Positions 20,911 to 57,634 are shown, numbered from the stretch's first letter. The stretch: 64,000 nt of DNA from Octopus sinensis (GCF_006345805.1 NC_043000.1:35340001-35404000); one strand, 5' to 3'. A program made the numbers and translations. The notes: generated from the sequence alone by a model not told the origin.

Positions 20911-21697
20911 GTCTTAAAGACATTGTTTTTCTGTACATTCACTGGGCCCTGCTAATGCACACATCTGTCTCTATTTCTTATCTTTCTAACACCTATCCCT
21001 CTTCGAACTATGGCACAGCTCAATAGCGTAGATATTTCCATTTGTGCAGCTAGTTACTCCCCTCCCTTCTCCCTTAAATAATAAGAAACAACTCGGCCGA
21101 TATCATCCCAGTATGGTTCAACGTTGCCCGATTTAAGACGGGAAAACTGAATAGCATCTAACTTATTTAAGTTATAACTCGTGTATTTATGTAGTTCTCT
21201 TTCGTTTATAAACAAAACGCGCACTAATATATATATATATATATATAGATAGACAGATAGATATAGACAGATAGATATAGATATATATATATATATATAG
21301 ATAGATATATATATATAGATACATATAGATATAGATATGTATAGGTATAGATATATAGATATGTTTCTTTATTGGCCACACAGGTCTGCACACAGATGGG
21401 ACAAATTACAAGGTAGAGCTTTTCTTTTGGGGGATGAAAAAAAAAAGTGGCGTAGGTTTTCGATCAAAAGGGATCGTAAAAGGGAAAAAAAGAAAGAAAA
21501 GGAAAAAGAAGAAAAAAGGGGAAGAGGAAAAAAAACGATCAATATGGATCGTGTATCACAGTGTCATGATGTACGGTGTAAAGTTTATCCGTGGGAAGAA
21601 AAGCCTACGAAAAAGACCACGGTAACCTCGGTCAATATTGTTATATGTTACCACATTTGTTTGCAAGTGGGTAACCCTCTGCTTTCAATTTCTGGGT

Positions 21698-24600
21698 TCA
21701 TTGGATTATGGTCAAGGTGGCTTCGTCATTCATACGTGCCATTCTTGCTACATTCATCCATCTTTTTTTAAAACATTCGCTAGACAAAACTTGCCTCTCT
21801 ACTCTCACTTTCCTTTTCAAGTGATACTTGAAGAAGTTGATGAGAGATTGACCAGAGAGAAAAGTGTTTGTCTCCAATCCTTTCAGACGCGTCCACCAGA
21901 TATATTCTTTCGCCATAGCCACAAGGATGATGAAAATAGCTCTTCCTCCCCGTTTGAGGGAAGGAGGCGTGACAATATTGACTCAGCTGATAAACCGACT
22001 CGTCCCACACGCGACAGCAGTTGTTCGACATAAGCCCACAGGTTGGAAATTGTTGGAGACTGCACGAGTGCGTGCAGAACGGTTCCGTCGCTCTGACCGC
22101 ATCTCGGGCAGGTCAGCCCCGTGTTTCTTGAGCCGTGTCTGTAGAGCTTAACCCGAACGGTTAGCGCTTCTCGGTAGCACTGCAGGCCAGGGATCTCTGG
22201 AAGTTGTCCATGGGCCTTGGCCCGAAAGTCGTCCCGAACAGGCGGGTCAGGTATTCCTCGTCGACGTCCAGGTTCGCCCCGAGCTCGTCGTCGTACCTCC
22301 CCTCCACTAATCCCCTATAGATTGCTTGGGTTGTGATGGAGTCACTCAAGGTCGATCCGGGACGGCAGAATTGCTTGAGAGCAACGCGACACTCGCGGTG
22401 CCACCGCCCTTCCTCGGCCTCTTTTTTTTATCCACGACTGCAGTTCGGTCATGGAGACGAGCTGCGGGAAAGCGTGCCTCACAAACGGCGACCACACCTG
22501 TTCACCGTCGTCTACGAAGAGCCTGAGATGTCGCAGTCTCAGTGCGTGTCTGCGCATCATCAACCACGGCATGCCCAGTCCTTCTTTTAACGGGTGTTGA
22601 CAGCAAATGGATCGCCTGACCATCGGGACGCATCCTTTCCTCAAGAAGCGAAAGAGAATGCGTTCTAGTTTGGTGATGGTAGGGACGGGACAAGGCACGT
22701 CGGTCAGGCAGTAGTAGATGACGGACGCGATGTACGTGTTCGCCACCTCGGCCCGACCTTTTGGGGACAGTTTCCTCTCGGCCCATTTCCGGGCGAGAGT
22801 GACCACCCTTCTCGTTATCTCGTTCCAGTTCTTCTCCATTTGGAGGTCCGCGAGCAACTCGACCGGACCGTCGGTCCAGCGTCCCACGACGGAGGCGCTG
22901 GTGGACGGCATGGGCTTGCTTCTCCAAGTGCCTAGTCGCAAGCCCACTGACTTTTCCCGGTTGATTTTCGCTCCTGTCACCGCTTCGTAGTATTTCAGTG
23001 TCTCGCCGACCAGCTCGATGTGCTCGTGGCTAGACACTATGATGGTGACGACGTCCGCGTATGCAGACACGCTCGTCCCGCATTCCAGTTCTCGCGGGAT
23101 GCCCCTCAGAGTTGCCAGCTTCCACAATAATGGCTCGAGAGTCAATACGTATAGAAGCGACGAGAGGGGGCATCCCTGACGGACCGAACGTGCGATGTCG
23201 AAAGGTCTCGATAGAAGTCCATTTACACGAATTACCGAACGGATGCCTCTGTACAAAGCGGCTATACAGCCGCGGAAGACGGGACCGAAGCCAGCCGCTC
23301 TGAGGACAGCCTCCAAGTATCGATGGTCTACCCTATCGAAAGCTTTCGATTGATCCAAATTGATCAGCGCCCCATCCATGCCAGGTGCGTTAACTACCCT
23401 GTCTATGATGTAGCGCATCAGGTGGAGGTTGTCATAGATGGTCCGGCCCGGCACGGCGCATGTTTGCGCCTTGTCGATCAGTTTCTCGATGACAAGCGCC
23501 AACCTCTTGGCTAACACCTTGGCCAAAATTTTCAAGTCTGCATTAAGCAGTGATGGGCCTAAAGTTATCTATTATATTTCCCTTGTTTAGATCTTTCTTC
23601 GGCAGTGTTACGGCTCCTCGGCTCACAAAACCAGGAATGCTCCCGTTTTGCTGCCAGTTGCAGTACACCGCTGTCAAGACGTCTCCAAACAAGTCTGGCA
23701 TACAACTGTAAAGCTCGTAGGGTAGACCATCCAAACCCGGCGATTTGTCCCTCGAGCATTCTGCCATCGCGTCCTGCACTTCCACCGCCGTGATGGCACC
23801 TTCGCAGCGCCCTGCCTCTCTTGTTGAGAGTCGTGGTAGGCTGTGTAGGTAGGCACTGAAGTCCACCCTACGTTCTTGCCCGCCACTCGTCCCGAACAGT
23901 CGGGCAAAATGCTGTTGAAAGGCCTCACACATTTTACTTGGCTCGAGGAATTGCGCCCCTGTTCATCTATCAGAGACCGAATGGTGGCTTTGTTGCCCTA
24001 TTGCGCCTCTGCCACCCGGGCCTCTCTCGCGGCTCCCACACCTTCGTTCCTTAGAGCACGCATCCAAGCTCTGACAGCACACCCTTCGTGTTTGGCGTTG
24101 AAGTGTTGGTCGAGGGCCAACCTCGCCGCCAAAACGTCGGATGCGATGCCGCTTCTAATTGCCTCTTCTAGCTTCTTAACTAGCTCACCCTCTACTCTAT
24201 TTCTATCTATGGCTAGTGCTTTGCTGTACCTAATTGCTTCTGCTTTTACTGCTCTCTTGAGGGCAAACCACCATTTGTTTTTGATGATGGCTCCCGTCAA
24301 AGCCCTCTTTACTAGTGTGCTAATCCGGTCTCTGAAAACCTGTCTCGATGGGAAAGACGCGTTTAGTTTCCAGTATCCGGGACCCTGCCTAAGTGTCTTA
24401 CCTAAGTCTAGCGTACATGTCACAAGTTTGTGATCCGTGTAGCTGACTATGTGGAATTGTGGACATTCTATGCTATCTCTATCTACTGCCCTACACAGTG
24501 TCCTATCTAGATACGATCTCGACGACCCGATGCGGTTGGTCCACGTCCACGTTGGCGCATTCGAGTGGTCTAGTCGGAACCTATCAGACACTTGAAAGCG

Positions 24601-25111
24601 TCTGAGCAGGTCTCTGAGGCATTTGCATCCCCGTCTATTCCTATCTCTGCCCACGTAGTCTACATGCGTGTCCAAGGTAGCATTCCAATTCCCCACTAAG
24701 AGTAAAGGACGAGACGTTCCCAAGAATACTTCTAGACGTTGAAAGAAATCCGCCCGAGATGTTAAGGGCGGTGCGTAAACTGATACGAGTCGAAAAGCGC
24801 ACCCATTGCTGCCGTCGACATCCAGAACGACCAGTCTACCCTCCGAGTCTATGAATATTGTCTTTACTTTGAGATCCAGACTCTCGCGAAAAAGTACCGC
24901 GGTGCCACGACCGCCCATTCTTGGCAGACAGGGGGGGAAAACAAATGCTGTGCTGTCCGCCAAACATGGTCTTTAGGGCCCGCGGATTGTGGAGTCTGGT
25001 CTCACTTATGGCTATGATTTCTAACTTGTGTGACTTTATGTCATTTAAGAGGTACCCTTGTTTCCAAGGGGTCCCCAAGCCACGCACATTTACACAACCA
25101 ATCTTGATCAT
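21698..25111 (-). pseudogene. ORF2 (APE endonuclease + reverse transcriptase + C-terminal CCHC), frameshifted
   Basis: MIKIGCVNVRGL, LLVGNWN, SYLDR and YTDH (APE). KSPGLDGLPYELY, NFRPIT, PGRTIYDN, LDQSKAFDRVDH, RQGCPLS and AYAD (RT). CPRCGQSDGTVLH near the C-terminus. Split over ORFs 24836-25111, 23998-24963, 23543-23932, 22342-23535 and smaller pieces. Confidence 0.9.
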
Positions 25112-25155
25112 AATCCTAATGAATTAGAATACAAGTGAAAGGAACAGAGGGTTAC

Positions 25156-27047
25156 TTACTGCTCGAAAGTTTTTGCTTTCTCCTCCCTTGGTTTGTCCTC
25201 GAGGAGATCCCAGTACAGTTTCTTTGTGAGATATTTTTGGCATTTACCAACCGCACTGGGGAAAATGCCTTTGAGTGTGTGGTGCAGACTTTTGGAGATG
25301 TGTAATATTTTGATGTGGTCTGGTGGTGTTGTGTATGGGTGATTGTTTGTTTTTATGTCATCTTCTGTTATGTTTGTTTTTGATTTGATGTATTCCATCA
25401 AATTTGTGTTTTTGGTGTCTATAGCTGTGAGCATGTTTGCTGTATATATTTTTGTGGTGTTGGTGTGGCTGTTGTTTGTGTTGGGTTTTGAAATGTCTTC
25501 GGGAGATGTATTTCCCCCTGTTTTGTTTGTGTTTCTGCTCTTTATTTTCCTTCCTTTTCTAGCTATTTGCCATTCCTCACTGGTTTCGTCTTCCGACGAA
25601 TTTTCTGAGAAATCAGAAGGGGGTAGGGGTATGTTGTAGGCTTCTATGTATGTCTGTGTAAGTAGTTGTGTTGCTGTTTTCGTTGCTGTTGGTTGTTGAG
25701 TGTTTGTGTGTGGTGAGTGCGGTATAAGGGATGGGGAATCAGTTTTTGTATATTTTCTTTGTTTTTCTGTTCCTTTGGTTCTTGCTGTTGTTGGTGGTGT
25801 TGGTAGTTTCTCAGGTGTTGAATAATTTTTAGTTGTTGATGGATTAGCTTGGTGTGTTTCTCTTGTCGTCTTCTGTGTTGATGGTGGTGTGGGTAGTAGA
25901 GCTTTTTTCTCGGAGTGTTGTGGTTGTGGTTGTTGCTCTTGTTGTGCAGTGGTTGGGCACTTCTTTTTCAAGTGTGTTTCGCTTCCACACAAATAGCAAC
26001 GTTGTCGCCTGCCCTCTACCACTACATAGGGTTTGTAGCCTTCTGGCAGTTCTATAGTGGTGGGTATCTTTTCTCTTGTTGTTTCATCCAATTGAAGGAG
26101 GAATTGGATTGATTTTCCCACCCAGTTTTTCTGTCCTAGAACAGCGATTTCAAGAATGTTTGTCTCTGCCATTTCAAAGCAGATGGCAGAGACTAACCAT
26201 TGTATTTCGACTTCAGGTGGTATATTTTTTATTTAGATTTTCGTTACCCTCTGGCCTAAATAGATTGGTATCATTATCAAGTCGTCTGATTGCAGCTCCA
26301 ATGTGGAAAATCGTTTTGCTAAATTTTCGTTGAGGAAACGTACTTGGACTGTGCCAAATTTATTTCTCCAACTGATATACTCCTTTGAGTCCCATGCAGG
26401 ACGAAGGCATTTTTCAATTTTTTCCTGCGGTGCATTTTCTGGTCGTCTTGTTTTCTTGTTGATGACTTTGTAGATTATTGTTTTTTTTGTGTTTTCCACG
26501 ATGTGTTGTGGAATGTGAAGATGCAATTTATCTCCTTCTTTGGTGAAGAGTGCTTTTGTGAGGTTTGTTTCCTGTGTGGTGAATTTTACGATTGTTCGAT
26601 TTTGTTTTGTCGCGTCCGCGAAATTCGTTTTAATTTTAGCAGTGTTAGTAGCAAAGGAGTTAGTTGTAGCAGTTGAAGTCGTGGTAGTGGTGTTGGTGTT
26701 GGCGGTGTTGTCTTCGGTAGGCGGCTTTGTGCTGATTTCGTTGTTGTTGTTGTTGGTAGTGGTGCTGGCATTCATGTTTGCGTCTGTATTCGTTTTTGAA
26801 ATCCCTTTCTCCGTCCTTTTTTCATCGACAAGTGGTGTAGGGAGTGGTGGAAGTCTAAGTTAATGTCGTTGGTCGCGGCGATGGTGAATGGTCTTGTGAC
26901 GTTAGTTTTGTTGTTGTTGTTGGTGGTTGTGGTGGTGACAGCGGTGTTCAAGCTGCGAGGTTTAGCAGCTAGTGGTAGCAATAGTGTTTCGCTACCGTTC
27001 CGCATGACTGGCGGGCTAGCCACGTGGTTTCTAGTTGCCATTTTCAA
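25156..27047 (-). pseudogene. ORF1 (gag-like nucleic-acid-binding protein), frameshifted
   Basis: CYLCGSETHLKKKC (CX2CX4HX4C) in ORF 25156..26172, upstream part in 26233..26775, probable N-terminus in 26772..27047. Stop lies about 44 nt before the ORF2 ATG. Confidence 0.8.
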
Positions 27048-27264
27048 AATGAAAAATGGCTAAAAGGAACCCACGAAAGTTTTGAAGTTTTTGGTAATTT
27101 CGCCCATACAGGGGCGGAATTCTACGTGAATAATTCTCAGGTTTTTAGTGAATGATCTTGCACAACGATTAAAACAAAATATTTGACAACAAGGAGTTTT
27201 AAACATGTAAAAGTGGCCAACTTACGTGGAGCCCATTTGACTAGCGTCCGTGCATGTCGGGGAT

Positions 27265-27306
27265 GATAGATAGATAGATAGATATGTAGGTAGATAGATA
27301 TGTAGG

Positions 27307-27349
<43 letters not shown>

Positions 27350-27529
27350 GTTTCTTTATTGGCCACACAGGGCTGCACACAGATGGGACAAGTTACAAGG
27401 TAGAGCTTTTCTTTTGGGGGATGAAAAACAAAAAACAAAACAAACAAAAAAAGGTGGCGTAGGTTTTCGATCAAAAGGGGAAAAAGAAAAAAAAGGAAAA
27501 GGAACAAAAGAAAAGAAAAGTGAAAAAAG

Positions 27530-27603
<74 letters not shown>
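27265..27603. repeat. (GATA)n microsatellite split by a LINE 3'-end fragment
   Basis: Arrays at 27265-27348 and 27532-27603. Confidence 0.95.
27350..27531 (-). mobile_element. 5'-truncated (~180 bp) copy of the Tx1-like LINE 3' end
   Basis: Near-identical to 21363-21530 (GTTTCTTTATTGGCCACACAGG...GTGGCGTAGGTTTTCGATCAAAAGGG). Confidence 0.92.
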
Positions 27604-27604
<1 letters not shown>

Positions 27605-27884
27605 GGAAAATAGGACAAGGTAGAAAATGCTAAAATAATTTTATCATGAACATTTTAATACCGGTTTCAGTCTTTGCGACTTTTTCAACTTAGAGTAAAA
27701 CATGAAAAACAAATTGTTGAAAAATCAAATGAAATGTTTTTTTAAAAATTATTTCCATAGTTTTCTAATAGAAAAAAGGAAAATGTCCCTCCTATCTCTC
27801 TCCCTTACTTTTGTGAAAGCTCGGTAGGTAGGTGGTAGCAGATCTGAAGAAATATTTAGTATATATATATCATGGTGATGATGA

Positions 27885-28020
27885 TCATCAATTAACGTCC
27901 GTTTTCCATGCTGGCATGAGTTGAACGGTTTGCCTGAAAACTAGTGAGCAGCACCAGACTCCAGTCTGATCTGGCATGGTTTCTACGGGTGGATGCCCTT
28001 CCTAACGCCAACCACCGCGT
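27885..28020 (-). mobile_element. SINE family B, 3' part
   Basis: CATCAATTAACGTCCGTTTTCCATGCTGGCATG tail and GGATGCCCTTCCTAACGCCAACCAC core. Confidence 0.75.
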
Positions 28021-28026
28021 AGCAAC

Positions 28027-28147
28027 TTGTCAGACTCAAATGACGGGAGGCACATAATCTCTCTAAAACTGGAGAGAGAGGAAAACGTCATGATTCTTCC
28101 CCCCAGTTGTAGAGAGATTCTGTGCCCCCGGCCCTTTGAGCCTGACA
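28027..28147. repeat. Imperfect 121-bp palindrome (MITE-like or hairpin)
   Basis: TTGTCAGACTCAAA...GGCACATAATCTCTCTAAAACTGG pairs with CCAGTTGTAGAGAGATTCTGTGCC...TTTGAGCCTGACAA. Confidence 0.8.
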
Positions 28148-29030: not shown

Positions 29031-29775
29031 CACTATTTATGGGATTGTTAAAAACGGAGAAGTGTTGGCGTGTCTACCACTATTTAGTTTCATCCACCTG
29101 TGTTCTGAGTTCGGATCCCATTCGGGTAGAATCTATTAACAAACTCATGGCCGTTATTAATTAAGGGGGTGATCGTTATTTTGACATTAATGTTACTTTA
29201 TTTTATCGACAGCAGGATTTGAACTCTTAACGAAAAGAGTCGAAACTAGCACTGCAAGGCATTACTCTAACACCCTTACTATTCTAACATCGCCACCCGT
29301 TACATAAAAATGTTTCGATGCTTCGCTATGAACGTGAGGTTTTAGTGACTGTTTGGCAGTCATTAGTGTAAGGGAGACAACCACTTCTAACTTAAATGTA
29401 TTTTGACTGAAAATATAATTTATCGTGGGAACATAGCGAAAATTTACCTCATAAAAAAACACTCCGTTCTTCACATATGTTAAGATAGTCTTTCAACCAT
29501 ATTTATTTGTCTATCTGTCTGTGTCCGTCTTCTTAACTGCCTACCCATCCATCCACCGATCCATCCATCCACCGACTTATTTACGATACATTACCGTTTC
29601 CGTATTGCATCGTTCTAAACCTTGATACACGACAGACGAGTTGTTATTCCGCCCCAAACAAACCCCTAATGCCGTTCCAGCCGTTTGTAGAGGGGTTTAG
29701 CAATGCATTAACTAATGTGTCCTTCATTGTTTAAGACGGTAGAGTGTGATTTAAAGGAATCATACCGTTATTTCT

Positions 29776-30189
29776 TATTTCTTTATTGCACTCAAGGGGC
29801 TAAACATAGAGGGGACAAACAAGGACAGACAAAGGGATTAAGTCGATTACATCCACTCCAGCGCGCAACTGGTACTTAATTTATCGACCCCGAAAGGATG
29901 AAAGGCAAAGTCGACCTCGGTGGAATTTGAACTCAGAAAGTAGACAGACGAAATACCTATTTCTTTACTACCCACAAGGGGCTAAACACAGAGGGGACAA
30001 ACAAGGACAGACAGACGGATTAAGTCGATTATATCGACCCCAGTGCATAATTGGTACTTAGTTTATCGACCCCGAAAGGATGAAAGGCAAAGTCGACCTC
30101 GGCGGAATTTGAACGCAGAACGTAACGGCAGACGAAATACAACTAAGCATTTCGCCCGGTGTGCTAATGTTTCTGCCAGCTCGCCGCCT
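29776..30189 (-). mobile_element. SINE family A dimer with a 49-bp flanking direct repeat
   Basis: Head AAGGCGGCGAGCTGGCAGAAACATTAGC, two cores, both followed by the GCCCCTTG.G.G.A.TAAAGAAATA tail. 29727-29775 equals 30190-30238 with 1 mismatch. Confidence 0.9.
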
Positions 30190-31315
30190 TTGTTTAAGAC
30201 GGTAGAGTGTGATTTAAAGGAATCGTACCGTTATTTCTACCGGACCGTTTGCCTTATTGAAATGCCTGCGTGGGAGAACACTGATACTTCCAGTATTGCA
30301 TTTCGAAACCCGGTGAATCCACCTGACAGTTGAGAGCAATTTAAAAAGAACGATAATGAACAAAACGCATAAAAATTTATGGAGGAAAGGAAGAAACTGA
30401 AACAAATCGATGAATTAGAATAGTTTGGGAAAAAAAAAACAAGAACAAAAGTTGATATGAGAAGAAATGTATATAGTAGTGGATTGTAGCAGTTACAATG
30501 GCTTTAATGGACTCTATTTAGAAAGATAAAGGTTGTGATAACATTCTTTAAAGAGAGCAAAGGTGGTTTTAACATCACTTAATGGGGGTGGAGTAAATGA
30601 CGAAGACTTGAGATTGAAAAAAAAAGTGGTTTTATATGTTTCTTTTAAGGAAATTCACTTTCGTCCATGGTTTCGTTTTGCATTTCATATGAGACTATTT
30701 AGGAAAGAAAATGTTCGACAGACTGCGAATAAGGAAATTTTTTCCGAGCATTGAAAGACAGAAAAATGAAGAGATCATATAACCTATTTAACTGTCGTGA
30801 ATATGGTCCTTCAAGTTCAATAGCCCGGATAAAAGATGTCAAGGAAGAAGAGTGTAACATAACGGAATAAACGAGGAGAAATATGGAAGAAAATATGTTT
30901 GAATGATAGCGGAAAACATGGAAGATAAATGTTGTGTCATTGGGTTATATACGGTCGAAAGTAATAGATTTTAAATAGATTCATTTTATCTCAATAAAAT
31001 ATAGCAAAGCCAAGTACACGGCGGAAAACAACAGGAAAGCTATAGAACTGACATATTGTTCAGGTTTCAATACTAATATCACACTCTTGGTGGGTTTACT
31101 AGGGACAGTACGGCACTGAGGATTCTCAAAAAGTCTGAAATAATACTAATCGTGATTACCAAAACTACCAGAAAAAATAAATATACAAGGATTTTATTTT
31201 GTATTCCACAAAAATGCAAAACAAAACGAAAGAATTAGGTGTCCTTGTTTAGAGTTAAATATACAACATCTTCAGGTTTGTCTGATGACACACACACAAA
31301 TATATATATATATAT

Positions 31316-32053
31316 ATAGTGTAATAAATAAAAAATATGCATACATACATACATATATGTACGTACCTACATCTACATGTATATATACATGCATATATAA
31401 ATATATATACATGAGTACAGGACACCACTACATTTACGTAGAACTCACCGAGAAACGAAAACGTAAAAACAAACGTGGAAACGGACCTAAAAGAAAAAAA
31501 CAGAGTACAAGACAAACTACACAAGGAAAAATTCCCTTTATCAGCTGTCCCTAGTTCAACTCCAGCGTGTTTCGAAGGTGAGGACAGAATACGACTCGTG
31601 GAACTAATCCCTCCTGCGAAGGAATTAAAGAAAATTACTTCGCAGAGGGGTAAAAACAAGGGAGGTTAAACATGTGACAAAAAAACGATACAAATAAAAT
31701 TACAAAATAAAATACAAAATAAAAATACAGAATAAAATTACAAGTACGAAAAATACAGTACAAGAAATAAGACAAACAAAAAAACAGACAATGAGGGCCT
31801 TAATGCTAGAGTTGAACTAGGGACAGCTGATGAAGGGAATTTTTCCTTGTGTAGTTTGTCTTGTACTCTGTTTTTTTCGTTTAGGTCCGTTTCCACGTTT
31901 GTTTTTACGTTTTTGTTTCTCGTTGAGTTCTACGTCTTTTGTGGTGTCCTTTACTCACGTATATATGTTTTTTTATGCATGTATATATACATGTAGATGT
32001 AGGTACATACATATATATATGTATGTATGCATATTTTTTATTTATTACACTAT
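31316..32053. repeat. Long inverted repeat: ~250-bp arms, ~238-bp spacer
   Basis: 31316-31566 is the reverse complement of 31805-32053 at high identity. Confidence 0.92.
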
Positions 32054-32278: not shown

Positions 32279-32315
<37 letters not shown>

Positions 32316-32330
32316 TGTATGTATGTATGT

Positions 32331-37566: not shown

Positions 37567-39382
37567 ATCACACACACATACACACACTTGTTTTATAGGT
37601 GAAGAAGTGCTGTCAAAGGCATTCCATCTACCCAGTTCGCGCGCTCACACATATAGCTAATACTGTAAGCTAAACAATACTTCATGTAAACTATAAAGTT
37701 ATTTGTTTTATCAGAATAAAAAATACTGGGGACGGTTCTCGAATCTACTGATAACTTTTTGGAATGGAATGTAGACTTGTTTTAAGACAACGAGTGAATG
37801 TTTCCATTAAGTTGACAAAATAACCCGAACTAGCATATTTAAGTGGTCTGACTGTTCCTCTAAACAAGTAACCTCAGAATTTACATATGCATAGTGAGAG
37901 AGAGGGGGAGAGGGAGAAGAACAGAGAGAGAGAGAAAGAGTGAGAGGAAAGAGAGAAACAGACATAGAGAATGGTAGTCTGCGTGCCGTAAAATTTAAAG
38001 ATATACGTGAACTAAAATTTTTTAAAATTGAAATGTTAACTTTATTTACATTGGATATCATTGCGGAACAAGCATAGAAATACTTTCACAAGAAAGAGTT
38101 TTACATACGGCACACCATTATTGTGATTATATGAATGAAAAGTTTAAAATGAATCGTTCTTGTAATAAGACCGACCACTAACAATGTAGCACTGGCTCGT
38201 AGGTATTTCCCGAATCCTAGACCACGTAACAAACTCCCTAAGAAAACAATGTGAATCACTCAAACGCATGAAGTCAGAGGGTTACAAATCGCAACGGCTG
38301 AGGGCAGAGTTCATAGTGGATGGTGAGGGTTTAGTTGGTTACTGAGAGTCGAGGCTCTGAAGAGAACTTTGAGACTAAGGTTTAAGAGAATTTCGCTCTA
38401 CCCATCTATACATATACAGATGCGCATTTTCGTTTCACAAACTAGACAAAGAGTACTCAATACTTCCGCTAGAGTCTATCCAGTTATTTAGATTATGCAA
38501 CGCACTCACATGTCCACATACGCGCAACCATTTATACATTGCATGCATTCTTTAGCTGTCCACCATTAAGAAAGGGTGGGGGGGAGGGGGGTGTAAGGAG
38601 GTGTTGGTGATAAGTGTTCGGTGCCAGCTGTTGCTAGAATTGGTTGGCATCAGTTGAAATGCAATATATCAAGGAAATTGTCCCAACATCCGGCAACACA
38701 ATGAACAACAACCAAAGAACAAATTGCCTCAGCAGATAATTACTAAATCTTTAGTCGATCACTTTGAAACGAGCTTCGATTTTTGCACCACGCTTAGTTT
38801 TCTTCTTTCTTTTTCTTTCTCATTGTGTGTGTGCGCGCGTGCGCAAGGGTAACGAATATGTTTTTTTTCTTAAGTTTTACTCTTTGTCCCTCGCAAACTC
38901 TCTCACACACACACATTCTCATACCTTCATTCATAGTAATAGATTGGCAGGTGTATGTGTGTGTGTGTGTGTGTGTGTCTGTATATATACACACATTTTA
39001 AACAAAGTCCACCTCTTCCTTCTTTCATGCTTCCTCTCCGGTTTGTTTTTATTTACTGTTCACCTTTCCATTTACCACAAACATCGTTCTCTCTTACAGT
39101 CTTCATCTCATTTCCTTCCTCTTCTTCTCCCTCCCTACATCCACCTTACTAATTTATCCCCCCGCCTCCCTCTAATGAAATAACTTGAGTATTTCTGTTT
39201 CAAGACAGAATAGAGAAATCGTTTATCTCTCTCTCTCTCTCTCCTTTTTCCATCTCCATGATCCACATTAATACATTGTCATTATATTGTCACACACACA
39301 TTTTCTTTATCTCGTCATACACCCTCCCTCATTTCTACACACATTCACTGCTTTCCCTCCACGCATCTGTGTGTGTGTGTGT

Positions 39383-39422: not shown

Positions 39423-40330
39423 GCTTGCATGCGCGCTCATCCAACCACCTATCCAACTTTACTTCTCTAATCTCTTCACCGATTTACGTGGATTTAACCA
39501 AATCTACTTCCTTTCCACGCAGTCCAGTTCTAACACCCCATCTACCCCGGTATCTTCATTGCTGCTTTCATACGCTTCTTATTGTCTTTTCTTTGCAACT
39601 CACTTCTATCCCACCCGCCGACCCATCCCCATGTTCAAACCCCCTCTCGTTTTTTCCTTCTTACCTTTCGTTCGTCCATCGAAGCCTAAAAATCACTTTG
39701 CACAGCAACAATTACTTAAACTTTAGCCAGTTCGATCCGATAACCCACCCTCCCCCATAATTGATTTCTGTCTTAATTCAGCTGTCTTTACAGCACCGGC
39801 TGTTTCTTTCCTTATTATATCAACTACGAGACTCCGCCTTCCATTGTATGCGTGTACACATACACACACACACATTTAAACACACCTCCAGCCAACGAGT
39901 CTACATTGTTCATATCAACAATACCCACCACCACCACAACAACAACAGCAACAACTACTGCAACTACTACTACTACTACTACTACTTTCACCATTATTAC
40001 CATCACCACCACCATACCTACTACCTCTGACAGACTCCTATGAGGTCGTTATTCCTGCAAAAAATAGTGCAGATTCGCCCTACAAAAAGTAACTTATCAC
40101 TTTGAAAAAGAACACATTAATATAGTCCATGATGCATTGTGCCTGAAAAAAGTTAAGAAATGATCATGAGTGGAACCCCTTTTATCCTAAATGTATTAAT
40201 CAAGACTAACCTAAGGTTAAACAACAACTAGAGTCCGGCGAAACACCACCGACGTCAACAACATGGCCAGTGGCACATCCAACAACTTCTTTACCGTCAG
40301 CAACTAATTATTACTAACACGACTACGGAA

Positions 40331-40810
40331 AGCCGGACGAGAGAAGGCCGGACGAGAAAAGGCCGGACGAGAAATGGCCGGACGAGAGAAGGCCGGACGA
40401 GAGAAGGCCGGACGAGAGAAGGCCGGACGAGAGAAGGCCGGACGAGAGAAGGCCGGACGAGAAATGGCCGGACGAGAAATGGCCGGACGAGAAATGGCCG
40501 GACGAGAGAAGACCGGACGAGAGAAGGCCGGACGAGAGAAGGCCGGACGAGAGAAGGCCGGACGAGAGAAGGCCGGACGAGAGAAGGCCGGACGAGAGAA
40601 GACCGGACGAGAGAAGACCGGACGAGAGAAGACCGGACGAGAGAAGACCGGACGAGAGAAGACCGGACGAGAGAAGACCGGACGAGAGAAGACCGGACGA
40701 GAGAAGACCGGACGAGAGAAGACCGGACGAGAGAAGACCGGACGAGAGAGGGCCGAACGAGAGTGGGCCGGACAAGAGTGGGCCGGACGAGAGTGGGCCG
40801 CACGAGAGAA
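40331..40810. repeat. Minisatellite: 32 x 15 bp, consensus GGCCGGACGAGAGAA
   Basis: Exact 15-bp period with no indels. Variants GACC-, -AAT and -GTG occur in blocks. Confidence 0.97.
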
Positions 40811-41609
40811 GGAAAACCGATTTTCAAATGACCTAAAAGTCTGAATTTCGTAAGCTTTTTAAACCGAATGCTCAAAAGACCAACTTTTGAAATAGTTTGG
40901 GAGAAAATGATGTGGAAACGGTCTTATGAGACATTTATGGTTCTTACTAGAAGTTTATTATAAAATTTTTAGTTTTATGCTATATCAGAATAGCAAAGAC
41001 GAGTTATGATTAGCATATTTATTTACATAATAATTCTAATTTTGGTACAAGGCCAACCAGATTCTTTGAACATGTGTAGCAAGCTGTAGTTTCTGTTTCT
41101 TTGTTAAATAATTTTTTAAGAATAGATGGGAAAACGTTTGAAGAGCGAAGATCGTAAATTTGTGGAAAAGTATAAAAACTTAGCGTTAGGTTAAGGATTC
41201 ATGTTTAAAGGTTATATAAAATTTTAATTGCATTTCATTAAATTTCCCCATCTTTATCAATTTCATCTTATTTCGTTAAATTCTGTTCATTTCATCATGT
41301 TTCCGTAATACTTTCATTTGGAAATTGCGACTTCCTGTATGCCGGCAATGGAAGTTTCCGATTGACCAAAATTTCAAAAGTCTTGTGACTCTTTCATTAT
41401 TAATTTCTAGAGAAAGTGAATGCAATTTTTGTCACCAGCATACATTGATGGAATTCAGACTGTGGGAAGCGTTTTAAATATATAACCCCTTCCACTCCTA
41501 AAACTGACGGCCTTGTGCCACAATTTGAAAACTCTTCTTCTTAGTATTATTGTTAACAACTGAATATGCTCGCTATATTTTGATTACTTTTATCATTTTG
41601 ATATAGCCT

Positions 41610-42010
41610 AAAGCGGCGAGCTGGCAGAAAGATTAGCATACCGAGCGAAATGCTTTGCAGTATTTCGTCTGTCTTTGCATTCTGAGTTCAAATTCCGCCG
41701 AGGTTGACTTTGCCTTTCATCCTTTCGGGGTCAATAAATTAAGTTGCGTACTGGGGTCGATCTAATCGACTGGCTCCCTCCCCCAAAATTTTACGCCTTG
41801 TGCCTAGAGTAGAAATGAATCGTTAGCATGCCGGAAAAATGCTTAGCAGAATTTCTTCCGACTTTGCGTTCTGATTTTAAATTCCGCCGAAATCGCCTTT
41901 GCCTTTCATCCTTTTGGGGTCGATAAAATAAATATCAGTTGAGCACTGGGGTCGATGTAATCGTGTAGTCACCTACCCCCAAATTTCAGGCCTAGTGCCT
42001 ATTGTAGAAA
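41610..42010 (+). mobile_element. Two tandem SINE family A copies
   Basis: GCGGCGAGCTGGCAGAAAG head, GAGTTCAAATTCC, cores, and GGCCT.GTGCCTA tails. Confidence 0.82.
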
Positions 42011-42325
42011 TAGTTACTTCGATATAGCATAAAAGAAAGTAAATGCTATGTTTTTCGAATAAACTCCGTTTTAAAACTAAATTTTCTTTTTAAGGTTTGT
42101 TTTCATATTTTTCTCTAAAATATTTCAAAATTTGGTATTGTAAGCATTCCACCTTTCAAGATTTCGGTTTTGTGATTTTCAGGATGCACGTAATTCGGCA
42201 TTCTTCTTACTTTCAGCCTTATGACTTCACCACCAAGACCATCACTATTATTTCCAAGATGACTATTCGACCTTGCCTTCTCTTGTTACCAATAAATGTA
42301 TTAAAAAGACTAACAACCCTCTCGC

Positions 42326-44077: not shown

Positions 44078-44109
<32 letters not shown>

Positions 44110-48280: not shown

Positions 48281-48349
<69 letters not shown>

Positions 48350-50290: not shown

Positions 50291-50376
50291 AATCATACTC
50301 CCAGATCCATAGTTTATATCTATATACAGTTAGAATAGTTAGTGGGCTGTTATGTAGATGCATGTATGTGTGTTTG

Positions 50377-50418
<42 letters not shown>

Positions 50419-50422
<4 letters not shown>

Positions 50423-50950
50423 AGGTCACTTTCGAGTGCTACTGGTAACATGTAACCCAGTACAACCTGTTGCGTGGTCGGATCGTCGGCGACTAAACCA
50501 GCAACCCCACCAAGCTTGCTTGGTGAGAAGGGTGTTTATTGGACACCTTGCGGGATGAAAAACAAAACCCGTCAAAGGGCGGAGGAACTCTTGAGAGTCA
50601 ACGGCCATCAAATAAATGTCTTAAGGCTCATGCGCGGGGACATAGAAATAATCGGACTGAATACCCGATCGCGCGGTTAAATCATTGGGAGTGAAGGACT
50701 CCTAGCCTTTGTTAGGGCATCCTTCTAGGAGATGGTAACTCCGACATAAAACCTGCGGGTCAGTGGTTACCGATGATGTGGACTTGTTCTTCTTTTCGGA
50801 TTATGGCTGCTGTTGCTTAGTGAGTGGGATTGACTCAGTGCACAGCCTTTCTTCACTTTAAAAAAAATCTTCTTGCACAGGCATTGCACGATAACAACAT
50901 TGATTAAGCTTCGCGCAATGGCCATACTCGATAACGAGGAGGCAGCCACC
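50419..50950. mobile_element. Unclassified ~530-bp GC-richer interspersed element within (TA)n
   Basis: Sharp boundaries against (TA)n on both sides; no convincing ORF. GGGCATCCTTCTAGGAGATGGTAACTCC...AAACC resembles RTE 5' UTR motifs (from memory). Confidence 0.5.
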
Positions 50951-50952
50951 AT

Positions 50953-51021
<69 letters not shown>

Positions 51022-51410
51022 TATATGCATATATACACATGTATGTAGGCAAATGGATATGAAAGTAAACAGATAGACATACAGACGGATAAATACATAG
51101 GTAATATGAACAGACAAGCACACATACATAAATACGCAAATGAAGACAAACACGTGACTCTACACACACACACACTTCACACAAGGACATATATGGAGAC
51201 ACACGACCACACATACACAGTACATGGTCACAAAAAATCCATACACACACAGACACACCCAGAAGGGCACACGTAAAAATACACAAACATGAATATGCAG
51301 AATACATACATGCAAACGTACACACATACATATATACATGCGCCCACACACACATACATACATACATTCATGCGCGTATACACACACATGCATGCATACA
51401 CGCGCTCACA

Positions 51411-52409
51411 GACAGTCCGACGAGGATCAGTGAGGCAATGAATGACCAGTTCAAAAGTGTCTTTACCACCCCGTTGGAACACAGACAAGTGAACGAACCG
51501 GTAGACTTCTTTGCCGCCTCGCCTATAACAAGCGAGGCAGTTACGACGAATACATCGACATTAGCGAAGAAGATATACTACTAGCCATAGATGAAGTGGA
51601 CACAAACTCAACTGCTGGTTCTGATGGTTTCCCAGCAATCCTCCTCAAATCGTGTAAGCATGCCCTGGCAAAACCCCTCCGGATTCTCTTTCAGAGCTTT
51701 CTTGCAAATGGCAGACTGCCAAGCAGGCTGAAGGAGGGAATAATATGCCCAATCCATAAAGGGGGAAGCAGAGCAGATGCCAAAAACTATAGGCCTATCT
51801 CTCTGACTTCACGTCATTACCAGGATGGCGACATTCAGAACCAGAGATAAGGAAACCATGATGGTCCTCTGGCGGACATTCGTCCTCAGCCGCCTGGATT
51901 ACTGCTCCCAGCTATGGTCACTCATCAGTGTGAAATTAACAACGGACCTTGAAGCAATCCGCAGAAGACGAGAGAGGTATGCAGTAATATACATCTGAAA
52001 GATCCTGGAAGGAATTGTGCCAAATTTTGGCATTGAAAATTACACCAATGCCAGAACGGGACGACACTGCGTAGTGCCAAAGATCCCAGCAACGCCATCG
52101 CGCTTCAGGACCAGCTACTGCAGCAGCCTGGGTTTCAAGGGCACACAGCTTTTTAATATTCTTCCAAAGAGTCTGAGGAACCTGCACAAAGTAGATGTAG
52201 GCGTTTTTGAATCAAAGCTGGACATCTTCCTATCAAAAGTCCCAGATGAACCAACCTCACGGCAAGAGGTGCAAATGAGGGTAGCTACATCAAACTACAT
52301 TCTTCACCAAGTGCCACATATTAGAGGAGGCTCTCAGTAATAACAGTGTAGCAAAACGGCGGTGCATCAGCATAGCCACAGCTCTGGGCTGAAACTACAG
52401 AAAAAATAC
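51411..52409 (+). mobile_element. CR1/L2-type LINE fragment with the RT core deleted
   Basis: STAGSDGFPAILLK...PIHKGG...NYRPISLTS joined near 51812 directly to RTFVLSRLDYCSQLWS...RRRERYAVIY; 3' end near GAAACTACAGAAAAAA. Confidence 0.82.
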
Positions 52410-53096
52410 ATACATACACCTATATACATACATATACATGCATATATATATATATATAGGCGTACGCATGCATACGTATATATGTCCCCCATACGCGCGC
52501 ATGCAGACGTATGTATGCCGCCCAAATTGGCCTGCATACATATATGTATAACCCTCTATAACCACAACATACATACATACATATGTATACCCCCATACGC
52601 GCGCATACGTAAGTCTACCAACACACATACACGCATGAATACGTATGTGTACACACATATGTACGCATACATACACACGCATAGGTAAGAATACCCTCAT
52701 TCACACGCATGCGTGCATATGTATACACACGTATGCATACATACACATGTATACAACCGAGACATGCATTCATGCGAATGTATACTGTCACACAATTAAA
52801 ACGTGTGTTCATCATAATTTTTCCTGCATTTGCTTTGTGTATCTTAATCAATAATAATGATAATAATAATGATAATAAGTACAGTCGTAATCACACCAAT
52901 AGACTGGGAGTATCCTGGATGGGGATAATCCACGTGGTTCCCTAATCTCAATAGAAGCAGCCACACAGCGAACACACAAGTTGCATATGATGACAGTTCT
53001 TTGTGTCTGAAGATGAGAAGGAGCGTCTAGCATCAGTTGGCCATGAAGACTGTTCTTTGACAGGCTCTGGCGCACTGAGAAAGCAAATATGTAGAC

Positions 53097-53648
53097 CCTG
53101 GCCAGAAGGCGAAATCTTTTTCCCCACAAGAGTTCCGGACCCTAGCAATGACCTCATTTGCATACAGCCAATCAGAGCACACCATGACCGTGTTGTCAAG
53201 TTAAACATACTCTACCAGGTAAACTAAAGACGATGAACGGTGTTGTAAGTCGCCAAGTTATGCCTGATTTTAGAAGGAGACAAGTAATTAGATAGATTTG
53301 CATCTATACCTATTATCGGATTTTGTTAGGGCCCCATACGGTAAAGATGTGGATGGGAAAAATGTGGGTAGAGGGGGATGTGATAGCAACCCTCTCCCCT
53401 TACTGTTTTACAAAGTAAGCAACAACACAAATTACTATGCAGAGGCAGCCATGGTTGGAACAAGAACGAGAAGAATTATCAAAAGAGAAACAAGTAAGGT
53501 CATTGCTCACCCAGATAACTTTATTTTATCATCCATCACTTGTTATGCGCTCATAGATTAGTTTGATGGTTGATCTCTGATTGGCTGTATGCAAATGAGT
53601 TCATTATTGGGGTCCGGAACTCTCGTAGGAAAAAATTTCGCTGCCAGG
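53097..53648. repeat. Inverted repeat pair (~80-bp arms), each carrying ATTTGCAT and CCAAT
   Basis: 53097-53177 vs reverse complement of 53575-53648; shared GAGTTCCGGACCC...CTCATTTGCATACAGCCAATCAGAG. Confidence 0.82.
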
Positions 53649-53654
53649 AGGGGG

Positions 53655-53975
53655 TCGTGATAATGATTTATTCCTTCTTTGGCGTTTCTTATCCACTGCA
53701 GTTGCTGTTGCCTTTTAAAACTTGTTTGTAGCGATTTAATGCAATCTCGCTCCACTTTCCGCTGTGTTGCGATTCACTCCCACTCTGTGGGGGTCAATCG
53801 CTGCTTAGGTGCGTTGGTGTGCCAGCTGGTCTTTCAAACGCTTCCTAGGGCCTCCTTTTTCTTTTTTTTTTCATATCGCGACTGAGATCGCTGTAGAATA
53901 CGGCCTTCTGAATTTGTTCATGCGTGCGACGTGGCCTGCGCATCTGAACAGCAATATGGTTTCAATGCTCAAGAT
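53655..53975 (-). mobile_element. RTE-type LINE C-terminal fragment
   Basis: Reverse complement reads QMAGHVARM...GGPRKRLKDQL, matching the RTE pattern WAGHV.RM...G.P.KR.KD.LK. Confidence 0.7.
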
Positions 53976-54145
53976 GTTGGCTTTCTGGAGTTAATTATAT
54001 CGACCCTAGTGTTTTACTGGTACTTCATACACACATATACATTATGCACATATATACATACAAACATATACCCATACATGCATAGGCACACGCGCATACA
54101 AAAACAAACATATACATACATACATGCACATGTATACACACACAA

Positions 54146-54268
<123 letters not shown>

Positions 54269-54543
54269 CACCATTGGAAAACTACATATATTTCGTGGTC
54301 AGAGTGAGAGGGTTTTAGTGAAAAGAATTATTGAAGAAACACTTCAGTAACTGGGAAGAATTACAAGTCCAGAAGAAGGCAGTCAACACGAGATGACATT
54401 TTGCTTTTTGTTTGAAATAAAAAGATACATTTACAGAACTAAAACCAGTAGCATTTTCTGGGTTGTTTACTTGAAGCATAAACTAGCGAAAAATGTGTAT
54501 TTTCTGATTAAATTACATATAATAATGGTCAAAATATTTTTCT

Positions 54544-57013
54544 TATTTCTTTATTACCCACTAGGGGCGACACAGAAAGGGACACTAAGAAACATGGGGA
54601 CATATAACATTATAATTAACTTTATGAACATGAATGTTAAACGAAAAAATGATTAATGAAAGCGATACCAACGGCCCCGTCCGTCAGCATCACTTACCTG
54701 TCCTTTGTTTTTCATAGTCACTTGAATGTTCCTTGCCAATACGAACAAATTCCATATCCATTCTTACTCCGAAATACTCATCCATATTTTCCACGAATTC
54801 ATCGCTCATTCTTATATCTTTCACCTCCCAATTCTCGCATTCACACATCACCATAAAGTCACCTATGTTCTTCTTTTCAATCACAGCATACCTAGTCTCA
54901 CCAACATCATACCATTTATACTCTTCCATTAGACTTTTAACTTCTTTCTGTTCAGTCATAGTACAAATGTACGGCCTGATATCGATTTCAATCTCTTGTG
55001 TGTGTGTATTCTTTTTTTTTCTTTTGTTTTCTTGTTGGGGGGGAGCGGGTGGGTTCAATGTCTGCATGGATAGGGTGGGACTCAGAGGGCGTGGGTGGTT
55101 TTGGGGTGGATTGGAGTTCCATATTATTTTCTTTTCCGCGTATTCTTCTCTTCCTCTTACTTCCAGCTTCCTTCCATTTCTGTGTATTCTCTTCCTCTGT
55201 TTCCTTCTCCTCTCTCTCTGGTTCGGGATCCATTTCTTTCCCTGGGGGAGGGCAGAAGGCTCTTATGTGACCCCTCAGCCACACTTGTAACAACGTGGAG
55301 CCCTGCCTCCACCCACACTCTCATGATCACTTCTCCCAGTCTGATGCTTTCCGTCAGGTCCACCAGTACCTCGGTCTCTGCCTGTACGTTCAGCTCCACT
55401 GTTACGCCTCTCCAGCCCTCAGACTTACCGAGGCATGGAGAATATCTACTTCGTCCTCGTGGCCGCTGATCACAGCCGCCACAATCCATTCTGCCTCCAC
55501 GTTTGGTGGCACTCCCTCCACCCTTATTCGTGTAATCCTCCTGTTTAAATACGTAGGTAACAGTGTTACCTTTTCCGACTTCACCGCCTTCGCCGCCATC
55601 TTCTCGCTGCAGATTCACTTTTAAAATGCACAACTACGGTCCCATACTTGGATCCTCGAGTCAGAAAATTTATTTCCTCCTCAGTTCTTCGCAGGGCTTC
55701 CTCTATCCATTCCATGGTTACAACTTCTTATTTCTTTATTACCCACTAGGGGCGACACAGAAAGGGACACTAAGAAACATGGGGACATATAACATTATAA
55801 TTAAATTTTATGAACATGAATTGTTAAACGAAAAAATGATTAAATGAAAGTGATACCAACGGCCCCGTCCGTCAGCATCACTTACCTGTCCTTTGTTTTT
55901 CATAGTCACTTGAATGTTCTTTGCCAATACGAATAAATTCCATATCCATTCTTACTCCGAAATACTCATCCATATTTTCCACGAATTCATCGCTCATTCT
56001 TATATCTTTCACCTCCCAATTCTCGCATTCACACATCACCATAAACTCACCCTGTTCTTCTTTTCAACACACATACCTAGTCTCACCAATCATACCATTT
56101 ATACTCTTCCATTAGACTTTTAACTTCTTTCTGTTCAGTCATAGTACAAATGTACGGCCTGATATCGATTTCAATCTCTTGTGTGTGTGTATTCTTTTTT
56201 TTCTTTTGTTTTTTGTTGGGGGGGAGCGGGTGGGTTCAATGTCTGCATGGATAGGGTGGGACTCAGAGGGCGTGGGTGGTTTTGGGGTGGGTGGGATTGG
56301 AGTTCCATTATTTTCTTTTCCGCGTATTCTTCTCTTCCTCTTACTTCCAGCTTCCTTCCATTTCTGTGTATTCTCTTCCTCTGTTTCCTTCTCCTCTCTC
56401 TCTGGTTCGGGATCCATTTCTTTCCCTGGGGGAGGGCAGAAGGCTCTTATGTGACCCCTCAGGCCACACTTGTAACAACGTGGAGCCCTGCCCTCCACCC
56501 ACACTCTCATGATCACTTTCCCAGTCTGATGCTTTCCGTCAGGTCCACCAGTACCCGGTCTCGCCTGTACGTTCAGCTCCACTGTTACGCTCTCCAGCCC
56601 TCAGACTTAACCGAGGCATGGAGAATATCTACTTCGTCCTCGTGGCCGCTGATCACAGCCGCCACAATCCATTCTGCCTCCACGTTTGGTGGCACTCCCT
56701 CCACCCTTATTCGTGTTAATCCTCTGTTTAAATACGTAGGTAACAGTGTTACCTTTTCCGACTTCACCGCCTTCGCCGCCACTTCCTCGCTGCAGATTCA
56801 CTTTTAAAATGCACAACTACGGTCCCATACTTGGATCCTCGAGTCAGAAAATTTATTTCCTCCTCAGTTCTTCGCAGGGCTTCCTCTATCCATTCCATGG
56901 TTACAACTTCTACCCTCTTCCTTTCGTTTGCGAACACCCTGTAAACAATGGTCCTCTTATCATACCATTCTTTTCTCCTGGGTGTCGGTGATAGTTCCAC
57001 CTCACCGCTTTCG
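54544..57013 (-). mobile_element. ORF1-only non-autonomous retroposon, head-to-tail dimer (A 54544-55724; B 55725-57013) inside one 18-bp TSD
   Basis: TSD TGGTCAAAATATTTTTCT at 54526-54543 and 57014-57031. Each unit encodes a gag-like protein (RITRIRVEGVPPNV...CYKCGLRGHIRAFC) followed by only about 150 nt of 3' UTR ending AATAAAGAAATA. No endonuclease or RT motifs. Confidence 0.88.
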
Positions 57014-57239
57014 TGGTCAAAATATTTTTCTAGTGAAGTAAAATTATTGTAAAACATATATTTGAAATAAGTATATTTTCGTGAAAAATTAAAAGAACTT
57101 ACCAGCGTAAAAAACAGATGTTTATCTTCCTCTGATAACAAAGTTTTTGACTGCCAAGCAAATAAACTCCCCTTGCAGGTTATAGACTAATCCGAATTTA
57201 CAGAAAAAGACGCTTCTCCTGTTAATATCTTTAAGAAAG

Positions 57240-57634
57240 AAGGCGAGCTGGCTGAAACGTTAGCACGCCGGGCGGAATGCGTAGCCGTATTTCGTCTGTC
57301 GTTACGTTCTGAGTTCAAATTCCGCTGAGGTCGACTTTGCCTTCCATCCTTTCGGGGTCGATAAATTAAGTACCAGTTACGCACTGGGGTCGATGTAATC
57401 GACTTAATCCGTTTGTTTGTCCTTGTTTGCCCCTTCTGTGTTTAGCTCCTTGAGGGTAATAAAGAAATAGGTATTTCGTCTGCCGCTACGTTCTGAGTTC
57501 AAATTCCACCGAGGTCTACTTCGTCTTTTATCCTTTCGGGGTCGATAAATTAAGTACCAGTTGCGTACTGGGGTTGATCTAATCGACAGGCCCCGCTCCC
57601 CCAAATTTCGAGCCTTGTGCCTAAAGTAGAAAAG
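57240..57634 (+). mobile_element. SINE family A dimer with 16-bp TSD
   Basis: TSD AATATCTTTAAGAAAG at 57224-57239 and 57635-57650. Confidence 0.9.

Follow-up and report, generated by a model that had tools for sequence, protein, structure and literature searches.

We analyzed a 64,000-nucleotide stretch of the Octopus sinensis genome (GCF_006345805.1, NC_043000.1:35340001-35404000), which is referred to below, in its full length, as the window. It contains a decayed long interspersed element (LINE), an element that retains only the first open reading frame (ORF) of a LINE (the ORF1-only element), and abundant short interspersed elements (SINEs). Comparison of the sequences confirmed that all three carry versions of one 35-55-nt 3′ tail around a tiny, conserved, predicted hairpin. 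A previous sequence-only reading of the window had claimed such a common end and had proposed a three-tier system of autonomous LINE, ORF1-only passenger, and tRNA-derived SINE.

Elements in the window

The window is eukaryotic DNA with a G+C content of 39.7%, in which ARAGORN found no tRNA gene and Rfam gave no match. The positions of the elements are listed in Table 1.

Table 1. Elements of the window and the recurring layout of their copies (TSD, target-site duplication; UTR, untranslated region; APE, apurinic/apyrimidinic endonuclease; RT, reverse transcriptase)
Feature	Position	Strand	Remarks
Decayed full-length L1/Tx1-type LINE	21363..27261	-	5.9 kb; from ORFs and Pfam
LINE ORF1	26775-25156	-	split in two pieces; CCHC knuckle
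LINE APE domain	25111-23998	-	Pfam Exo_endo_phos, E 1e-9
LINE RT	23932-22342	-	Pfam RVT_1, E 9e-20
LINE zf-RVT-like C-terminus	22341-21698	-	Pfam zf-RVT, 16.2 bits, below threshold
LINE 3′UTR	21697-21363	-	
LINE 3′ tail module, full copy	21363..21417	-	...CCTTGTAATTTGTCCCATCTGTGTGCA-GACC-TGTGT-GGCC-AATAAAGAAAC; covariance score 64.9 bits
Second LINE copy, 5′-truncated	27350..27530	-	~180 bp; tail module 27350-27404; stem GCCC..GGCC; 63.6 bits
(GATA/TATA)n microsatellite directly 3′ of full LINE	21230..21362	.	same repeat also 27262-27349, 27531-27613
ORF1-only, upstream copy U	55725..57013	-	5′-truncated within ORF1, frameshifted; tail 55725-55784, ending ...GGGTAATAAAGAAATAAGAA
ORF1-only, downstream copy D	54542..55724	-	tail 54542-54599; 60.7 bits
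TSD AAAAATATTTTGACCA of U + D	57014..57029; partner 54526-54541	-	16 bp; encloses U and D jointly
SINE A-A dimer	29775..30189	-	sole terminal A tail 29775-29831; internal A tail 29956-30013; 65.7 / 76.7 bits for the two A tails
TSD of A-A dimer	30190-30237 + 29727-29774		48 bp; begins GAAATAA, the last 7 nt of the element
SINE A-B dimer	57240..57634	+	left monomer, internal A tail 57414-57471; right monomer 5′-truncated, B tail ~57590-57634
TSD AATATCTTTAAGAAAG of this A-B dimer	57224-57239 + 57635-57650		
SINE A-B dimer, common junction	9288..9688	-	internal A tail 9454-9511; B tail ~9289-9340
SINE A-B dimer, common junction	59107..59496	+	internal A tail 59285-59342; B tail ~59454-59496
B-type SINE monomer after this dimer	59520-59738	+	
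Two head-to-tail B-tail SINE monomers	41608..42013	+	second 5′-truncated, begins right at the tail of the first, 41815/41816
B-tail SINE monomer	60904..61113	-	
5′-truncated B-tail SINE monomer	ends ~12297	+	B tail 12252-12297
Longer copy then truncated copy, window	54542-57013; 41608-42013; 9288-9688; 29775-30189; 57240-57634; 59107-59496		
Longer copy then truncated copy, Argonauta locus L001	10800-11321; 8014-8649		

When the RT of the window LINE was compared with solved structures, human L1 ORF2p was the best match (E 5e-20; R2, E ~2e-12), and its best relatives in the databases are from cephalopods (Argonauta hians, 64%; contigs, 71-76%; cuttlefish), as expected of an octopod-type genome. 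The zf-RVT domain is present in many of these relatives and is above the Pfam cut-off in two relatives of the LINE, P0002 (36.3 bits) and P0001 (27.8 bits); the window copy is decayed, with at least two frameshifts in its C-terminus. A CCHC knuckle lies in ORF1, and the CCHC in the ORF1 of the L053 LINE described below passes the Pfam threshold; Pfam detected no RNA recognition motif (RRM). From its APE domain, its RT closest to L1 ORF2p, and the zf-RVT of its relatives, this LINE appears to be a non-long-terminal-repeat retrotransposon of the L1/Tx1 group. One (GATA)n microsatellite houses both LINE copies in the same orientation, with repeat blocks on both sides of each, and the end of the LINE tail (...TATCTAT) matches the surrounding (TATC)n repeat. 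This arrangement suggests microsatellite-directed insertion at this single locus.

The ORF1-only element is represented by one locus in the window, where copy D follows copy U head to tail with 97% identity. D is the more 5′-truncated copy, and its first base lies directly at the 3′ terminus of U. Both copies are frameshifted, and no intact ORF1 is present. The reading frame aligns with ORF1 of the window LINE (35% over 54 aa and 45% over the knuckle; E 3e-6 and 1e-5) and is colinear with an intact LINE ORF1 over 177 aa (E 4e-11); it is a true ORF1 homologue. Pfam detected no APE or RT domain, and a TSD encloses the pair. The element is a retrotransposed, ORF2-deleted LINE, its status as a family being unproven. 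The three proposed tiers do share a tail, as shown below, but the middle tier consists of a single locus with two 5′-truncated and frameshifted copies. The window LINE is not the parent of this element, because the two ORF1s are too distant. A search of the protein database with the conceptual ORF1-only protein gave no homologues and hence no trace of the predicted sibling LINE. Between the CCHC knuckle and the tail there is an ORF of ~125 aa (54690-55067 and 55890-56150, minus strand), with no Pfam match and no likeness to the LINE.

The SINE is a short non-coding dispersed repeat whose core occurs in 12 copies in the window, with TSDs and 5′ truncations. Its basic monomer terminates in a tail designated B (...CCCCTCCCCAAAAATTTCGGGCCTTGTGCCTAGAGTAGAAA). 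A second tail, designated A, occurs five times and had been taken as the terminal motif of the family. It is terminal only once, at the end of the A-A dimer (...GCAATAAAGAAATAA at 29775). The other four A tails lie inside dimers, where each is joined to a second, 5′-truncated monomer at an identical junction (...AAAGAAATAGG / TATTTCGTC). Three of these four dimers finish in a B tail, and at least one, with the TSD AATATCTTTAAGAAAG, was mobilised as a unit. The TSD of the A-A dimer is unusually long and has one mismatch; the pair of B-tail monomers is bordered by one 8-bp repeat (GATATAGC). Neither tool applied confirmed that the SINE derives from a tRNA: ARAGORN reported no gene, and Rfam had no match at its gathering score or with E <= 1. 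By eye, strings resembling box A and box B (TAGCACGCCGG and GAGTTCAAATTCC) were all that could be recognized.

One layout recurs among these elements and at an Argonauta locus (last rows of Table 1). At the 3′ terminus of a longer copy, or a few bases beyond it, a 5′-truncated copy of that element or of a related one begins. The layout is consistent with template jumping or with priming at an older tail. For the U/D pair, a tandem duplication at the DNA level is unlikely, since the junction falls precisely at the 3′ terminus of the element and the same order of longer and truncated copies is also found in unrelated elements.

The common 3′ tail and its hairpin

The tail strings quoted in the sequence-only reading were all present where it had placed them, on the minus strand except for 57414-57471. 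Two details differ: the copy at 21363 reads GCAGACC, not GCAGCCC, and the string at 29776 closes with a GAA that is part of the 48-bp TSD, which starts with GAAATAA. The motif AATAAAGAAA occurs six times in the window, confined to the sites that had been cited, where 0.5 occurrences are expected by chance. When the last ~200 nt of each element type (LINE, ORF1-only, and SINE-A) were aligned locally, the matching part was always the terminal 40-52 nt (z = 4.8-12.8 against shuffled sequences; SINE-A versus the window LINE, z = 7.3-9.1 over 50-52 nt). We built a covariance model (R1) from 13 tails and scanned the 64 kb with filters off. The scan returned precisely nine sites (60.7-77.3 bits), namely two LINE, two ORF1-only, and five SINE-A tails. 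Weak matches at 38801 and 11426 (<=22 bits) proved on reading to be unrelated sequence. The window contains 113 AATAAA sites, and the ~107 outside the tails had no R1 score.

The tail was then compared among relatives of the LINE. When the window LINE was set beside L002 and the Argonauta relative, identity was 55-66% over the terminal 38 nt, 26-31% over the remaining 3′UTR, and ~75% over the coding DNA, so that the tail is an island of conservation in the 3′UTR. At a 14-kb Argonauta hians locus, R1 matched sites on which it had not been trained (28-48 bits). At least two SINE families end in such sites, reading ...GGCCCTTGTGGCTAAYAGAGAAATCTAT or ...TTCTGTGTTYGGCCCTTGTGGCTAAYAGAGAAATCTAT, and the Argonauta LINE at the locus ends in ...GGCCCTTGTGGCTAATAAAGAAATCTAT, which matches the SINE tails. 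The tail is thus also present in Argonauta LINEs and SINEs outside the training set, and the partnership recurs in a second octopod genus.

No copy carries a poly(A) tail. The final nucleotides of the element are repeated at the start of the TSD in the SINE A-A dimer (GAAATAA), the ORF1-only element (AGAAAAAT), and an Argonauta SINE (CTAT). Neither the SINE nor the tail motif was found at locus L004, which surrounds a 47%-identical RT; contig L021 stops short of the tail and contributes none. The SINE core had no match in the genome contigs or in the viral contigs. A metagenome scan with GTCCCN{1,2}TCTGTGTN{12,22}TAAAGAAA gave 16 matches, all by chance, in unrelated prokaryote-like contigs.

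For the tails, RNAalifold predicted, unaided, a single structure of four pairs closing a 5-base loop, in agreement with the small stem-loop that had been proposed just before AATAAAGAAA. The core is a 4-bp stem with the loop CUUGU (or CUAGU). Its stem falls into three classes: a LINE type, GGCC-CTTGT-GGCY, in Argonauta LINEs and SINEs and in L002; class A, GCCC-CTWGT-GGGT, in SINE-A and the ORF1-only element; and class B, RGGC-CTTGT-GCCT, in SINE-B. These classes are separated by two two-sided swaps (pair 2, G:C to C:G; pair 3, C:G to G:C), and the outer pair is variable (G:C, G:U, or A:U). Single-mutant intermediates are also present, in the window LINE (GCCC..GGCC) and in one Argonauta SINE (GGCC..GCCT). 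Across 25 tails, pairing was found in 86.9% of cells, compared with 18-50% when the partners were slid; pair 2 is GC in 12 tails and CG in 5, and pair 3 is CG in 13 and GC in 7. None of 500 shuffles reached the observed pairing or covariation score. The stem-loop is therefore backed by compensatory changes, which give modest support, because there are only two underlying events.

On its 5′ side the hairpin has a pyrimidine-rich arm (UCUGUGU), and on its 3′ side a purine-rich one (AAUAAAGAAAU or AAUAAAGA), followed by a few terminal nucleotides. The arms may extend the stem. The extended outer helix (UCU.UGU with AUA.AGA) is compatible with pairing, shows zero covariation, and is unproven.

The B tail and a second LINE lineage

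Relatives of the LINE protein were also found in genome contigs labelled as bacterial, where 54 of 56 loci come from one metagenome-assembled genome (MAG) labelled Arenicella (CAXXMW01, 'MAG: uncultured Arenicella sp.'). Its contigs (L023-L076) are 13-94 kb long and consist of head-to-tail LINE arrays. The array LINE is intact and 6.4 kb long, with units 99.2% identical and both ORFs open; it has ORF1 with CCHC, APE, RT, and zf-RVT. We conclude that these contigs are eukaryotic DNA mis-binned into a bacterial MAG. Similarly, a protein annotated as 'zinc-binding domain-containing protein [Herbaspirillum sp.] MAG' (P0057), with 60% identity to the LINE ORF2, is probably another animal sequence in a bacterial bin.

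LINEs of the L053 group, from these arrays, end in ...CCCCTCCCCAAAAACTTCA-AGGC-CTTGT-GCCT-T-(second hairpin)-AAATAAAG-CAGACTAGAAGGTAAA. The second hairpin, of 6-8 bp, follows the CUUGU hairpin and lies just 5′ of AAATAAAG. Its arms differ by family (CTGTGTA/TACACAG, CTATGTA/TACATAG, CTATGT/ACATAG, and CCTGTA/TACAGG), and it covaries clearly among L034, L036, L038, L046, L053, L064, and L073 (at ~6390-6470; in L064, at ~8400-8480). Both hairpins were predicted in all seven variants of the group (z = -1.0 to -2.8), which indicates that structured 3′ ends are a feature of the L053 group.

The B tail of the SINE aligns with the tails of an Argonauta SINE (z = 7.3), the Argonauta LINE (z = 5.3), and the L002 LINE (z = 4.4). 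With the tail of the intact L053-group LINE, the value is z = 16.3, and blastn gives the same match: a block of 32/33 nt runs through the hairpin, followed by a 26-nt gap that removes the second hairpin and by the terminal AGASTAGAA. R1 did not detect the L053-group tails, and the kinship of the B tail comes from direct alignment. The CUUGU hairpin is the element common to every tail examined. By these alignments, the B tail descends from a second L1/Tx1-like LINE lineage through loss of the second hairpin. It does not come from an unrelated partner, and the system is broader than the three tiers that had been envisaged.

Other repeats are present in the window. A minisatellite at 40328-40812 consists of 32 copies of a 15-bp unit (GAAGGCCGGACGAGA; 95% matches), with ORFs across it on both strands. 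An ORF at 4234-4719 (minus strand) with a DDE_3 transposase domain (E 1.5e-12) is a remnant of a Tc1/mariner-type DNA transposon. An inverted repeat (31316-31566 and 31805-32053; 251 bp, 93% identical, arms ~240 bp apart) may be a foldback or miniature inverted-repeat transposable element (MITE)-like element. Long (TA)n-rich tracts at 54146-54264 and 61818-62275 cross-match in both orientations.

Possible role of the tail and known systems

We propose, with a probability of about 65%, that an octopod L1/Tx1-type LINE lineage uses the shared tail as its 3′ module for recognition and initiation, and that SINEs and the ORF1-only element are copied in trans through this module. The ORF2 protein of the LINE would bind the hairpin module on its own RNA, nick the target, and begin reverse transcription at the extreme 3′ end, while the last few nucleotides of the RNA would pair with the nicked target DNA. 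Every RNA with the module could then be copied in trans, including SINE RNAs, which look like RNA polymerase III transcripts with a tRNA-like head, and the RNA of an ORF2-deleted LINE that retains ORF1. Given the annealing step, older tails and matching microsatellites would be favoured as targets.

The window LINE is a relative of the driver and not the driver itself, as the sequence-only reading had also supposed, because it is decayed by frameshifts, sits in a (GATA)n microsatellite, has a mismatched stem, and shares just 35-45% ORF1 identity with the ORF1-only element. Since SINE-A and the ORF1-only element share the stem GCCC..GGGU, they point to a sibling LINE outside the window, expected to end in GCCC-CTWGT-GGGT-AATAAAGAAATAAG. 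A full LINE with the predicted end ...GAAATAAGAA was not found in the data searched. The partnership of LINEs and SINEs through a common tail is genuine and coherent: homology, terminal position, conservation, covariation, TSDs, and microhomology were all seen in the sequences. Recognition by the protein, mobilisation in trans, and the identity of the driver are inferred from them.

Several observations weigh against this proposal. The covariation represents just two evolutionary events, tallied across many related copies. The stem has just 4 bp, and for most window copies its folding energy is no better than that of shuffled sequences (z = -2.4 to +0.65). The outer arms can pair and never covary. 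Strand specificity is weak, because the antisense strand still pairs in 76/99 cells, compared with 86/99 for the sense strand. All but one of the A tails are internal relics, no intact LINE bearing a class A tail was found, and the ORF1-only protein lacks relatives in the database. Class B LINEs were met only in the CAXXMW01 contigs, including those of the L053 group, which are binned as a bacterial MAG.

A first alternative, which we consider improbable, is that the tail acts at the level of DNA integration and steers priming by homology to old tails and microsatellites, with no protein-bound RNA hairpin. It would account for the microhomology between element ends and TSD starts, for the one (GATA)n repeat that contains both LINE copies, and for the recurrent head-to-tail pairs (U/D, the SINE dimers, 41608-42013, 10800-11321 of Argonauta L001, and the 6.4-kb LINE arrays). 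However, the microhomology covers the last 4-7 nt only, whereas the hairpin lies 10-25 nt upstream, and the compensatory changes favour a folded strand. Priming by target homology is probably an added step of the proposed recognition rather than a substitute for it.

A slightly less probable alternative is that the tails are historical relics, captured from LINE 3′ ends without a recognition role, and that mobilisation is relaxed or depends on another partner. The four internal A tails, which are clearly unused, the thermodynamically marginal hairpin, and a window without an active driver are all as this view would have it. Against it, the tail is the sole conserved part of diverged 3′UTRs across genera, the same module terminates several independent Argonauta SINE families, two compensatory swaps preserved the stem, and a relaxed mechanism would have no poly(A) to use. 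A role of the conserved block in 3′ processing, by AATAAA polyadenylation and downstream elements like those of rodent 'T+' SINEs, is very improbable. In its favour, AATAAAG occurs in the ORF1-only element, in the window LINE, and in two SINE-A tails out of five. We rejected this reading because AATAAA is not the conserved part: three A tails have AGTAAA instead, Argonauta SINEs have AATAGA or AACAGA, and the B tail (AGAGTAGAAA) lacks it. The strongest conservation lies upstream, in the loop CTTGT and the stem, and no copy has poly(A).

A wider and tentative picture, less probable than not, may also be drawn. The CUUGU hairpin could be the common 'handle' of an entire octopod L1/Tx1 radiation, with the stem variants (GGCC..GGCY, GCCC..GGGU, and RGGC..GCCU) as specificity classes that co-evolve with the RT. 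These LINEs, and not RTE or CR1, would then have driven the very large expansion of octopus SINEs, and priming on tail targets could explain the head-to-tail pairs and the 6.4-kb LINE arrays.

Octopus genomes are reported to contain active L1-Tx1 families and a mass of unclassified SINEs to which no partner has been assigned (PMC13282606, PMC8967140, PMC9115989). In one octopus genome, SINEs make up ~11.6%, and 893 of 900 recently active SINE families are unclassified, with no LINE partner discussed (PMC13282606). In the literature we found no publication tying octopod SINE tails to L1/Tx1 LINEs, Repbase and Dfam being outside the comparison. Common tails and stringent recognition have long been known, following the 'common tail' rule of Ohshima and Okada for stringent LINE/SINE pairs (PMC3472496, PMC3747384); the octopod system is of this known kind, in the L1/Tx1 group, for which such tails have rarely been documented in animals. 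The structured tail names a candidate driver, the L1/Tx1-type LINEs, for at least two SINE tail classes, and the stem class offers a simple sequence test for matching each SINE family to its LINE. It would also give an animal case beside the few stringent pairs of the L1 clade, so far from maize and green algae (PMC3472496). Such a case bears on whether stringent recognition is ancestral in the L1 clade.

The eel UnaL2/UnaSINE1 is a stringent LINE/SINE pair with a common 3′ stem-loop. The octopod tails resemble this type in the 3′ homology of SINE and LINE, the small conserved hairpin, the lack of poly(A), and the short target-annealing end. They differ in that the partner is of L1/Tx1 type (CCHC ORF1, APE, RT, and zf-RVT) rather than L2, CR1, or RTE, and in that the stem has 4 bp and is known here from sequence.

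Non-autonomous LINEs that keep only ORF1 are known as HAL1 (L1), HeT-A (Jockey), and Ag-Sponge (CR1) (PMC5786205). Like HAL1, the octopod element combines an ORF1 homologue with a LINE 3′ tail and a TSD and has no ORF2. Unlike the three known elements, it is represented by one locus with both copies 5′-truncated and frameshifted.

Among animal LINEs, crocodilian Tx1-Mar LINEs have been connected with SINEU, and the Tx1 elements Kibi and Koshi are microsatellite-specific (Kojima 2015, PMC4494074). The present system is similar in that an animal LINE would mobilise SINEs and that the window LINE, a candidate Tx1 element, lies in (GATA)n. The SINEU connection consists of a shared target preference and 5′ heads, whereas the connection here is a shared 3′ tail. 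Unlike Kibi and Koshi, the copies of SINE-A, SINE-B, and the ORF1-only element lie outside microsatellites.

The closest parallels are within the L1 clade, where tail sharing is rare in the literature, as the sequence-only reading had noted. Among 58 pairs surveyed, there were three such SINEs, all from maize or Chlamydomonas, with a conserved hairpin end of ~45-50 nt (PMC3472496). These pairs are maize LINE1-1_ZM with ZmSINE2/3 and Chlamydomonas L1-1_CR with its SINE (Ohshima 2012, PMC3472496). As in those pairs, an L1-clade LINE is involved, conservation is much higher in the last 45-50 nt than elsewhere in the element, and the hairpin shared with the SINE has compensatory changes. Unlike the plant and green algal pairs, the octopod system includes several SINE tail classes and two LINE sub-lineages.

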